This document shows positions 19,101 to 22,100 of a stretch of DNA of 64,000 nucleotides, piece by piece. Origin of the DNA: Mizuhopecten yessoensis (Eukaryota); the NCBI RefSeq assembly GCF_002113885.1, contig NW_018403537.1, positions 1,258,095 through 1,322,094 on the forward strand. The letters are read 5' to 3'. The notes beneath the pieces were generated by a model. The model saw only the letters and a list, made by a program, of their open reading frames with translations. It ran no database searches and was not told where the DNA came from. Positions within the stretch are counted from its first letter, which is position 1. Every line of letters begins with the position of its first letter. A program made the translations under genes and the position numbers.

Positions 19101-22100
19101 AAGCGGAGTAAAGTATCTTGCTCAAAGATACACCACATTGCCGTGCCGTGGCGCGAGCCCGCAACCCTTCGGTTACGAGTCCGGCGTCCTACCACTGGAC
19201 TACTGTGCCTCCTCATTTACTCCACAAATTTTAGATATGAAGCTTGTTTTCCAAAATATTATGTGCCTGCAATTGACTAATTTACCTTAATATACAAATA
19301 TTATAGGAGATTTCTACAAGTCGATTATTGAGTCCTAATTATATAAACTCCTCTTTTCGAATGGGACAAATTTAAACGGACAAGTAAGGCTCTGGATTTT
19401 GTCAAAATTCTAGAATAAAATGTTCAGCAAATGATTTTCACACTTTCACAGTTGAACACTTGGTCAGTTATATAAATCACTCAAAAATTCCAAATGATGT
19501 AAAATACTGGAAATAGAGAAAAGTGTTGAAAATTACACATGTCTTGTCAAATATAAGTATATTTCTAAATATGAGCAGGACTGTTACATAAACTTACAAA
19601 ATGAATTGGTCTAAAACACAGAAATGTATTTAAACTCAATATTGACCAACTGATACACCTGACAAAAAAAATCCCTATTTTTCACATTTCCAAATTAACT
19701 GCCTTAACTAGCTACCATTTGAACATTTTTCACCAGGTATTTCTTTTCGAAGTGATACTTAATTTATCAATGTTGTACTGTCATTCCTAAAACTTTCATT
19801 AAAACAGATGTTTGTTTTTTAAATATAGTATGTATCCTCAATACTCAACTCACCATCTCCTATAACACTAACTGGGACTCTGGAAACTGGGAAACGGAAC
19901 TTATCCTGAGAACTCATATACAAGAGGCCCATGGGCCTAAATGGTCACCTGAGTCTACAGTATTTATTTTTGTTGTTGAAATATGTACCAATTTGAGTAA
20001 AAAATAGTATAATGTTAACTTAACTTTGTCAGGACCATGAGCTGATCATTCCTAGACCAATTTTAAGTGAGATCGGCCTATTAGAACTTAGTAGCAAAAT
20101 AGCGGCCATGGCAGCCAAATTGTATTTCTGATTGACCCGAAAAATAACAACACTTTGTCAGGACCATGATTCGATCATTCCTACAAAGTTTCAGTTCAAT
20201 CGGCCAAGTAGATCTTTACTTTAAGTTTGAAATAGTTTACCAAAATGGCAGCTGTGGTGGCCATATTGGATTTCTGATCGACCTGAAAAATAACAACACT
20301 TTGTCAGGACCATGAGTCAATCATTCCTACAAAGTTTCAGTTCAATCGGCCTAGCAGAACTTGACTTTAAGTTTGAAATATGTTTTCAAAATGGTGGCCG
20401 TGGCGGCCATATTGGATTTATGATTGACCTGAAAAATAACAACACTTTGTCAGGACCATGAGTCGATCATTCCTACAAACTTTAAGTTCAATCGGTCCAG
20501 CAGAACTTGACTTTAAGTTTGAAATAGGTTTTCAAAATGGCGGCCGTGGCGGCCATATTGGATTTCTGATCGACCCGAAAAATAACAACACTTTGTCAGG
20601 ACCATGAGGCGATCATTCCTACCAACTTTCAGTTCAATCGGTCCAGCAGAACTTGACTTTAAGTTTGAAATAGGTTTTCAAAATGGTGGCCGTGGCGGCC
20701 ATATTGGATTTCTGATCGACCCGAAAAATAACAACACTTTGTCAGGACCATGAGGCGATCATTCCTACCAACTTTCAGTTCAATCGGTCCAGCAGAACTT
20801 GACTTTAAGTTTGAAATAGGTTTTCAAAATGGCGGCCGTGGCGGCCATATTGGATTTCTGATCGACCCGAAAAATAACAACACTTTGTCAGGACCATGAG
20901 GCGATCATTCCTACCAACTTTCAGTTCAATCGGCCCAGCAGAACTTGACTTTAAGTTTGAAATGTAAAATGTTAACGGACGACGGACGACGGACGACGGA
21001 CGACGGACGACGACGGACGAAAACGGATAGCAATAGGTCACTTGAGCTAAAGCTCAGGTGACCTAAAAATGCTCTATTCAGTATTTGAAAGAAAGCTATC
21101 ACCTTAAGTAGTTTTCCATTCGGTGACAAGATAATTATATAATTTTGCTTAAACTTCAAGGCTTTTTGTGTGTAAGAGAAGTGTTAATTTTGTTTAGATT
21201 TCAAGACTAACCTGCTATGTGTGTGTAAGAGAAGTGTAAATTTTGTTTAGATTTCAAGACTAACCTGCTATGTGTGTGTAAGAGAAGTGTAAATTTTGTT
21301 GAGGTTTCCAGACTAACCTGCTCTGTGTGTGTAAGAGAAGTGTTAATTTTGTTGAGGTTTCCAGACTTACCTGCTCTGAGTGTGTAAGAGAAGCGTTAAT
21401 TTTGTTGAGATTTCCAGACTTACCTGCTCTGTGTGTGGTCCAGTTGGACCTGTAGATTCTCCATCTCCTCCTGAAGCTCGTCATTGGTTCTCTGTAGCTT
21501 CCTCACCATGTTGGCCTGGGTATCCACCTTTACAAACATACAACATATCACAATCTATCTGTGTCAAAATGTTAGCCTGTGTAACAGCTAAGGAATATGA
21601 GGAGGAAATACTGCCTTACTGGCGGCAAGCTAGCTTTTCCAGTGATGTGGTATATTTAAACCTGGGGACCCCCTCACTACTTAAGCAACGCCGGGCGTGG
21701 TCAGTAGTTGGATGGGTGACCGCCCGCACGTTACACTTGGTGGCAGCGGTGGGACTCTGTGATCATGTAAGGCCATGGCCAGTTCCTGGTGGTTAGGGAA
21801 TGTGCATCGATTCACATGGAGGATCTACGGGATTCCCCGGGCCAAGTCTCGGGACGAGACTTCTCTGAGGTGGGAATAGTATAACAGCTCAAGAATAAGG
21901 GGGAAAATACTGCCTTACTGGCAAGCTAGCTTTTCCAGTGATGTGGCATAACCCAGGGACCAGCTCACTAGTTCAGCAATGTCGAGCGTGGTCAGTAGGT
22001 GGATGGGTGACCCCCCCACACGTTACACTGCACAATTGGTGGCATCACCCATACATACAGGTTACAATATACATTACTATCTATCACACAGTATCTTACC

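Follow-up and report, generated by a model that had tools for sequence, protein, structure and literature searches.

We report a family of miniature long terminal repeat (LTR) retrotransposons in the scallop Mizuhopecten yessoensis, known to us first from a single copy in a 64,000-nucleotide (nt) stretch of its genome (contig NW_018403537.1, positions 1,258,095 to 1,322,094, forward strand), which we call the window and from whose first letter positions are counted. The best explanation of this 448-nt element (positions 21580 to 22027) is that it is a decayed copy of a nonautonomous family of the type called terminal-repeat retrotransposon in miniature (TRIM), with a segment of the 5S rRNA gene in its LTRs, and we consider this explanation probable. 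The features expected of a TRIM are all found: two TG...CA terminal repeats, a length below 1 kb, the absence of coding sequence, a primer-binding site, a polypurine tract, and a target-site duplication of fixed length.

A multicopy TRIM family in the scallop genome

When the species' own assembly (987.6 Mb in 82,659 contigs) was searched with the window copy as the query, the first look returned 615 candidates, and 45 matches were scored. Among the latter are at least 28 copies of full length that lie on other contigs, cover the query from position 1 to 448, and are 75 to 85% identical to it. An earlier note, made from the letters of the window, had proposed a multicopy mobile element and had named the lack of further copies with the same termini and duplications, that is, a local duplication, as the outcome that would speak against it. 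We looked for that outcome and it did not occur, as the copies share their ends and carry 4-bp duplications. Across an alignment of 29 copies, mean pairwise identity was 0.74 to 0.90 in all segments of the element versus 0.30 in the 10 nt outside the terminal TG and CA, and the purine tract adjoins the 3′ LTR in every copy. Perfect 4-nt target-site duplications (TTTC, ACAC, CTTT, CTAT, GTAT, and GTAC) were present in 6 of 27 copies with readable flanks (chance P of about 1e-9), and 8 more of the 27 matched at three of the four positions (chance P of about 1e-11). At one locus (L005), we found an LTR-core-LTR-core-LTR array with the remnant of a fourth unit, flanked by CAGT and AAGT. Because of the shared borders, the 4-bp duplications, and the tandem LTR-core array, we conclude that the window element is a true multicopy TRIM and not a local duplication.

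Genome-wide copy number was estimated from a conserved 24-mer of the LTR and another of the core, each allowed up to three mismatches. The LTR 24-mer occurs at 301 places in the whole assembly and the core 24-mer at 75, with no occurrences in either control. As LTRs thus outnumber cores by about 4:1, the counts point to many solo LTRs. In all, the family numbers a few hundred copies. The two LTRs within a copy are 79 to 96% identical among the copies sampled, and these copies are therefore old. Some LTR motifs were also seen in pairs only 134 to 250 nt apart (for example, C3955:898303/898501, C2396:66342/66476, and C2011:155166/155343), and such spacing may reflect either derivatives shortened by deletion or tightly packed tandem arrays. 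Elsewhere in the 64-kb window, no further copy or LTR of the family was found.

Architecture of the window copy

The arrangement of LTRs, primer site, hairpin, and purine tract at 21580 to 22027 that the earlier note had described was confirmed both from the letters themselves and with a repeat finder, and is given in Table 1. The repeat finder returns the LTR pair as collinear direct-repeat blocks that are 84 to 97% identical, and the non-coding core between them measures 144 nt. The 5′ LTR contains insertions private to this copy, relative to the others, at 21621 to 21623 and 21655 to 21659.

Table 1. Features of the element and the adjoining exon, by window position
Feature	Position	Strand	Remarks
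Host exon, 26 codons, coiled-coil type	21450..21527	-	Acceptor AG at 21529-21528
5′ flank CCTG	21576..21579	+	No in-register match to 3′ flank; duplication eroded or shifted
5′ LTR, TGTAAC...GTTACA, 156 nt	21580..21735	+	Direct letters and repeat finder
TTTT run in 5′ LTR	21635..21638	+	Proposed RNA polymerase III (Pol III) terminator, here presumably read through; putative role
5S rRNA-derived segment, 5′ LTR	21681..21724	+	5S positions about 52-95: box A, intermediate element (IE), box C
Spacer CT	21736-21737	+	Between 5′ LTR and primer site
Primer-binding site TGGTGGCAGCGGTGGGA, 17 nt	21738..21754	+	Complement of host tRNA-Leu(AAG/TAG) 3′ end plus CCA
Non-coding core stretch	21755..21843	+	Includes copy-private GGCCAT duplication at 21771-21776
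Perfect 8-bp hairpin AAGTCTCG-GGA-CGAGACTT	21844..21862	+	17 nt ahead of 3′ LTR; family-wide
Polypurine tract	21867..21879	+	Adjoins 3′ LTR; direct letters
3′ LTR, TATAAC...GTTACA, 148 nt	21880..22027	+	Direct letters and repeat finder
TTTT run in 3′ LTR	21931..21934	+	Proposed Pol III termination site; putative role
5S rRNA-derived segment, 3′ LTR	about 21970..22013	+	Pairwise alignment to 5S

The window copy is old, as its visibly diverged LTRs had suggested in the earlier note: the two LTRs are 88% identical (ungapped identity of 0.884; Kimura two-parameter distance of 0.127). Its target-site duplication is eroded. The flanks, CCTG and CTGC, are out of register here, whereas the duplication length of the family is 4 bp; a worn 4-bp duplication was one of the two readings given in the earlier note. 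The palindrome GGCCATGGCC, which had been listed as an element of the core, is indeed present at 21771 to 21780. However, the GGCCAT at 21771 to 21776 is a 6-nt duplication private to this copy and missing from the others in the copy alignment, and the palindrome is therefore not a feature of the family. The window copy is inert and decayed, and lies antisense within an intron.

The 5S-derived segment of the LTR

We compared the LTRs by pairwise local alignment with two 5S references from the same assembly, its sole full 5S gene (L031) and a 5S-like fragment (L034). LTR positions of about 92 to 137 align to 5S positions of about 50 to 95, a register seen in most of the 57 LTRs examined. The median local score of 57 LTRs was 29 to 32, compared with 14.4 ± 2.2 for 1140 dinucleotide shuffles, which places the similarity about 7 standard deviations (SD) above the shuffles; between 30 and 44 of the 57 LTRs exceeded the best of all 1140, and all did so in the same register. 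Neither end of the 5S gene is present in the LTR, only the part that comprises box A, the IE, and box C, as the earlier note had said. In the type 1 Pol III promoter of the Xenopus 5S gene, box A spans +50 to +64, the IE +67 to +72, and box C +80 to +97. Given these positions and the aligned span, the segment corresponds exactly to the internal control region. On this alignment, the 3′ half of each LTR stems from a 5S rRNA gene, namely from its internal control region.

As for the 5S genes of the host, the single full-length gene in the assembly (L031) sits on a 629-nt contig that probably represents an array collapsed in assembly. In box C, this gene departs from the canonical type, which the TRIM LTRs keep. 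Of the other 5S copies (L032, L033, and L034), two are truncated, consisting of the first 68 nt and an unrelated tail, and one is degraded at its 5′ end.

Primer site and tRNA-Leu

The earlier assignment of the primer to tRNA-Leu can now be tied to the host's own genes. The 17-nt site TGGTGGCAGCGGTGGGA is the exact complement of the 3′ terminus of tRNA-Leu(AAG) and tRNA-Leu(TAG) plus CCA, the genes themselves ending in ATCCCACCGCTGCCA. The host genome has 20 places with this ending and no encoded CCA, and four of the six that were fetched were identified by ARAGORN as tRNA-Leu(AAG) or tRNA-Leu(TAG) genes. In many TRIM copies, the complementarity reaches 18 nt. About a third of the copies carry a variant site, TGGTGGCAGCGTAGTGAC (…GCGTAGTGAC), for which no matching tRNA gene was found in the host genome; we take these copies as a derived subfamily. 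Carriers of the variant include L004, L006, L009, L010, L012, L017, L023, and L028, in which pairing with tRNA-Leu is limited to the first 11 nt.

A candidate Ty3/Gypsy helper

The assembly was also searched with a pattern made of GTTACA, two nt, and the primer site, with the TRIM's own upstream base excluded. This gave 16 places (none in the control), 4 of which are not TRIM copies. Two loci, L041 and L046 (extended as L052 and L051), belong to a single Ty3/Gypsy family, a low-copy one with 34 candidates in the assembly. Both encode gag with a zf-CCHC domain, an aspartic protease, RVT_1, RNase H, Integrase_H2C2, and rve. Their LTRs, of roughly 1.1 to 1.2 kb, start with TGTAACG and end with CCGTTACA, followed by TT and TGGTGGCAGCGGTGGGAT, and L051 is flanked by the 4-bp duplication GTAA/GTAA. 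The only significant primary similarity between these Gypsy elements and the TRIM is a block of 25 to 27 nt, running from the LTR end through the spacer into the primer site, in which they are identical to TRIM copies (E of about 1e-9).

The two families also resemble each other in a hairpin. In both L051 and L052, CCAA-TGTTCG-GGG-CGAACA-T lies 21 nt before the 3′ LTR, and at each locus it is the only TCG-N3-5-CGA hairpin with at least six paired bases in 10 kb. The corresponding hairpin of the TRIM, CCAA-GTCTCG-GGA-CGAGAC-TT, stands 17 nt ahead of the 3′ LTR. Both hairpins have the same prefix and TCG/CGA core and a G-rich triloop, and the three pairs that differ do so in a compensatory manner. 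It is possible that this hairpin, standing ahead of the polypurine tract, is a packaging or recognition signal. The two families thus agree in spacer, primer site, LTR termini, and duplication length and in having a hairpin ahead of the purine tract, and the TRIM family is likely to have been copied in trans by this Ty3/Gypsy family of the same genome. The autonomous Gypsy-type partner postulated in the earlier note is in this way matched in its TGTAAC...GTTACA termini, its tRNA-Leu primer site, and its 4-bp duplication, but not in its purine tract.

Another Gypsy-like element (L053), which has GTTACA and a tRNA-Leu primer site, was considered as a helper and rejected, as its ends are TGTCAC...GTTACA and its duplication, GATAT, is 5 bp long. 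It extends over L074:1774-2201 and L053:1-5754 and is a young derivative that arose by deletion; its LTRs, about 1.47 kb long, are 98.8 to 99.8% identical, and an AA spacer precedes the primer site; its 3.3-kb core encodes gag and RT-RNase H (reverse transcriptase-RNase H) and no integrase. Within L052, an extra 368-amino-acid frame with a C2H2 zinc finger lies at 6220 to 7323, between pol and the hairpin and purine tract, and the 3′ LTR of L052 is cut off directly after its first TGT.

Proposed transcription and its alternatives

In the mechanism that we propose, the 5S segment would recruit TFIIIA/TFIIIC and Pol III, and transcription would begin near LTR position 42, which is about 50 nt upstream of box A. 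In the 3′ LTR of the window copy, the equivalent of 5S +1 falls at about 21921, which puts the TTTT run of Table 1 at +11 to +14. Such a run stands at LTR position of about 53 in nearly all copies, in both LTRs, and the path of roughly 285 nt between the two runs has almost no other T4 in the 29 copies. The polymerase would pass the early run about 11 to 14 nt on, continue across the core, which is free of T4, and terminate at the run in the 3′ LTR. The resulting RNA would be about 300 nt long and would carry the same roughly 14-nt repeat (R) at either end, following the logic of the plant element Cassandra, and the Ty3/Gypsy family would supply copying in trans, with the hairpin as a candidate packaging or recognition signal. 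Judging from the sequence features, we put the chances of Pol III recruitment and of an LTR-to-LTR transcript with a short R at about even.

We examined reads of the family in four raw RNA sequencing (RNA-seq) runs under the same species label, keeping those of at least 80% likeness. The reads fall on both strands, 86 to 97% of them continue into unlike flanks, and depth over the core is about a quarter of that over the LTRs, which equals the genomic ratio of 1:4. Practically no reads were at least 99% like the window copy. This pattern fits passive read-through and is neutral with respect to a short non-polyadenylated Pol III RNA.

Several observations weigh against our explanation of the element. 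The four RNA-seq runs, whose libraries are poor for short non-polyadenylated RNA, contain no pile-ups of starts or ends and no discrete transcripts, and the T4 run about 11 nt past the predicted start could abort transcription. The Rfam 5S covariance model, suggested in the earlier note as a check, left both the region and the isolated LTR unscored even at E ≤10. Such a miss is to be expected of a fragment that lacks the 5S helices, and the 5S claim therefore rests on the pairwise alignments with their shuffle controls. The IE region departs from canonical 5S (GCC to GCG). As regards the helper, the 4-bp duplication of the Gypsy family comes from one element (L051), and its polypurine tract differs from that of the TRIM; a search for autonomous elements that combine the hairpin and the purine tract of the TRIM itself was negative, with nine pattern matches versus seven in the control and the hairpin only in a TRIM copy. 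Finally, recent activity was not seen, the LTR pairs of the sampled copies being no closer than the identities given above.

An alternative that we regard as possible, though somewhat short of an even chance, is that the family is the same TRIM but its 5S segment no longer has a function and is left over from, for example, a SINE3 (a family of short interspersed elements, or SINEs) or a 5S pseudogene inserted in an ancestral LTR. Transcription would then depend, as in ordinary TRIMs, on a Pol II promoter in the LTR or on read-through. The read-through character of the RNA-seq signal, on both strands and with no discrete ends, would suit such a relic, as would the lack of an Rfam score for the LTR and the fact that the 5S segment is only slightly better kept among the aligned copies than the rest of the LTR (identity of 0.84 to 0.85 versus 0.78 to 0.82). 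However, the part of 5S that has been retained coincides with the internal control region, neither more nor less, as it does in the nemertean element Ajax. The T-run keeps a fixed distance upstream, the roughly 285-nt path between the runs is free of T4, and the length of the element suits Pol III products, and RNA-seq libraries of this kind catch short non-polyadenylated RNAs poorly.

Possible relation to Ajax of nemerteans

Ajax (Ajax-1_NGe and Ajax-1_LiLo) has been described from two nemerteans only, in a screen that covered nemerteans only (Kojima 2024, PMC10886601). It is 421 to 434 nt long with LTRs of 154 to 163 nt, retains from 5S no more than box A-IE-box C, has 5-bp duplications and a primer site that was attributed to tRNA-Leu, and its use of Pol III is putative as well; its hosts are closely related, and it is taken to have arisen within the nemertean lineage (PMC10886601).

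We compared short motifs of the published Ajax sequences with the scallop TRIM by eye. The two are alike in size (421 to 434 nt versus about 430 to 448 nt, with LTRs of roughly 150 to 160 nt), in the excess of LTRs over cores, and in a tRNA-Leu-type primer site. The boundaries of the 5S segment agree, and in both elements about 11 to 14 nt separate the segment from the end of the LTR. In the IE, the scallop TRIM departs from canonical 5S at three points, and Ajax shares two of these (GCC to GCG, GTT to GTC/ATC). About 40 nt upstream of box A, both elements have a T-run with CCAGTG directly after it. Both cores close with a hairpin core TCG-(N)GGA-CGA, then TCTCTG, then a purine tract of the GGGGGGAAT type. 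In Ajax, this region reads GACTCG-AGGA-CGAGTC or GGATCG-CGGA-CGATCC, then ATCTCTG and a G-rich tract ending in GGGGGGAATGA or GGGGGAGATGG; in the scallop TRIM it reads GTCTCG-GGA-CGAGAC, then TTCTC(G/T) and, in most copies, the tract GGGGGGAATAG. The elements differ in host (Nemertea versus Mollusca), in duplication length (5 bp in Ajax, Table S2, versus 4 bp), in termini (TGTAT...AATACA in Ajax versus TGTAAC...GTTACA), and in the complement to tRNA-Leu (6 nt in Ajax versus the full 17 to 18 nt), and the remainder of the LTR and core has no obvious similarity by eye.

These likenesses raise the possibility that the scallop TRIM is a direct relative of Ajax, through an old lophotrochozoan lineage or horizontal transfer, and not the result of an independent capture of 5S. 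We think this somewhat unlikely. The shared place and boundaries of the 5S segment, the two derived IE bases, the T-run with CCAGTG, the hairpin core with its purine tract, and the length, all compared by eye, argue for kinship. The different duplication lengths and termini and the 6-nt match of the Ajax primer site to tRNA-Leu argue against it, and the shared features of the core could instead stem from related autonomous helpers. Equally tentative is the wider idea that the scallop TRIM and Ajax descend from one ancient or horizontally exchanged lineage that may have coevolved with a single Ty3/Gypsy clade via the conserved hairpin. If this were so, the hairpin would serve in packaging or recognition and allow an RNA made by Pol III to exploit a helper that is itself transcribed by Pol II, and for no 5S-LTR TRIM before the scallop family would both the helper and the cis signal have been identified.

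Other known systems and significance

Cassandra, with a length of 565 to 860 nt, a fuller 5S-like domain, and experimentally shown Pol III transcripts, is a TRIM of plants (Kalendar et al. 2008, as summarized in PMC10886601 and PMC7215508), and its R between the start and the T-run is given as 18 nt (PMC10886601). The scallop TRIM shares with it a 5S-derived promoter segment in both LTRs, tandem LTR-core arrays, probable solo LTRs, and a very short R (18 nt versus a predicted length of about 14 nt). In contrast to the 448-nt animal element, which has only about positions 50 to 95 of 5S, Cassandra is a plant element of 565 to 860 nt whose near-complete 5S-like domain has a terminator of its own. 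TRIMs of the Helenus type, with tRNA-bearing LTRs, are common in pteriomorph bivalves, and animal Helenus elements have 4-bp duplications and Gypsy-type helpers (PMC10886601). Helenus and the scallop TRIM follow the same TRIMp3 concept, with a tRNA-derived (type 2) promoter in the former and a 5S-derived (type 1) promoter in the latter. The bivalve element biv-TRIM has terminal repeats of 202 to 218 nt, a core of 77 to 80 nt, the purine tract GGGGAGA, and no clear primer site; no 5S segment is reported for it, and its authors, whose GenBank search of sequenced bivalve genomes took in a scallop, did not name that genome as one with similarity (Satovic et al. 2019, PMC6934838). Beyond being a bivalve TRIM with tandem arrays and solo repeats, it is a different element from ours.

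SINE3 elements are SINEs headed by 5S, depend on long interspersed elements (LINEs), and have a LINE-type tail and variable duplications. They share with the scallop TRIM an internal 5S promoter on a nonautonomous retroelement. LTRs, a primer site, and a purine tract are all absent from SINE3, whereas the scallop element has each of them and a duplication fixed at 4 bp.

Two simpler origins of the 5S likeness fare far worse than those weighed above. A chance match in the GC-rich end of the LTR, with which the Rfam miss would agree, is very improbable and is refuted by the shuffle test, in which the median LTR stood about 7 SD above the shuffles, 30 to 44 LTRs exceeded the best of them, and a single register was kept. 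A local duplication of a 5S pseudogene, or two neighboring SINE3 copies, would account for nothing beyond two 5S-like segments 291 nt apart and is practically eliminated, being refuted by the genome copies and their alignment: dozens of full-length copies on other contigs have the same architecture and borders, with 4-bp duplications, a primer site, and a purine tract, and with no poly(A) or LINE-type tail.

The earlier note had given Ajax as the only animal 5S-LTR TRIM reported, and this holds within the searchable literature, where we found no animal 5S-LTR TRIMs beyond Ajax and no follow-up on TRIMp3 (Repbase and Dfam lie outside that search). Two metagenome scans for box C together with the terminus and primer site gave no matches. 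The scallop family is a molluscan member of the Ajax/Cassandra kind (TRIMp3), new as far as the searchable literature shows.

A molluscan family widens the animal range of the 5S-LTR design, known before from plants and two nemerteans, and raises the question of whether the design had a common origin or whether the same promoter segment of 45 nt was captured more than once. In addition, a concrete candidate for the helper is available here, in contrast to Cassandra and Ajax: a Ty3/Gypsy family that agrees with the TRIM in ends, primer, and duplication length and has a covarying hairpin. Such a TRIM/Gypsy pair would allow study of how a Pol III transcript is packaged and copied by a Pol II-type retroelement. 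LTRs of this kind are also a source of 5S-like fragments near genes, and annotators of genes and noncoding RNAs should mask them.

Genomic context in the window

The element lies inside an intron, 51 nt from the acceptor AG of the exon in Table 1 and antisense to the host gene. The antisense position close to an acceptor, as given in the earlier note, is thus correct, but the name CCDC102 that it attached to the gene is unconfirmed, as a look-up of a neighboring exon returned generic coiled-coil clusters only.

In the intron just downstream (in the sense of the gene) of the minus-strand exon, a 53-nt unit is repeated 5.1 times at 21167 to 21437 with 94% matches. On the minus strand, a 5′ splice site that resembles the consensus, CAGGTAAGT or CAGGTTAGT, is present in each unit, and the repeats extend as far as the real donor at 21449-21448. 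A 6-kb stretch of the window contains four minisatellite arrays (24680 to 25964, 26137 to 26553, 27622 to 28959, and 29375 to 30303), with periods of 45, 51, 39 (34 copies, 99% matches), and 81/140 nt, and they give rise to long spurious open reading frames.

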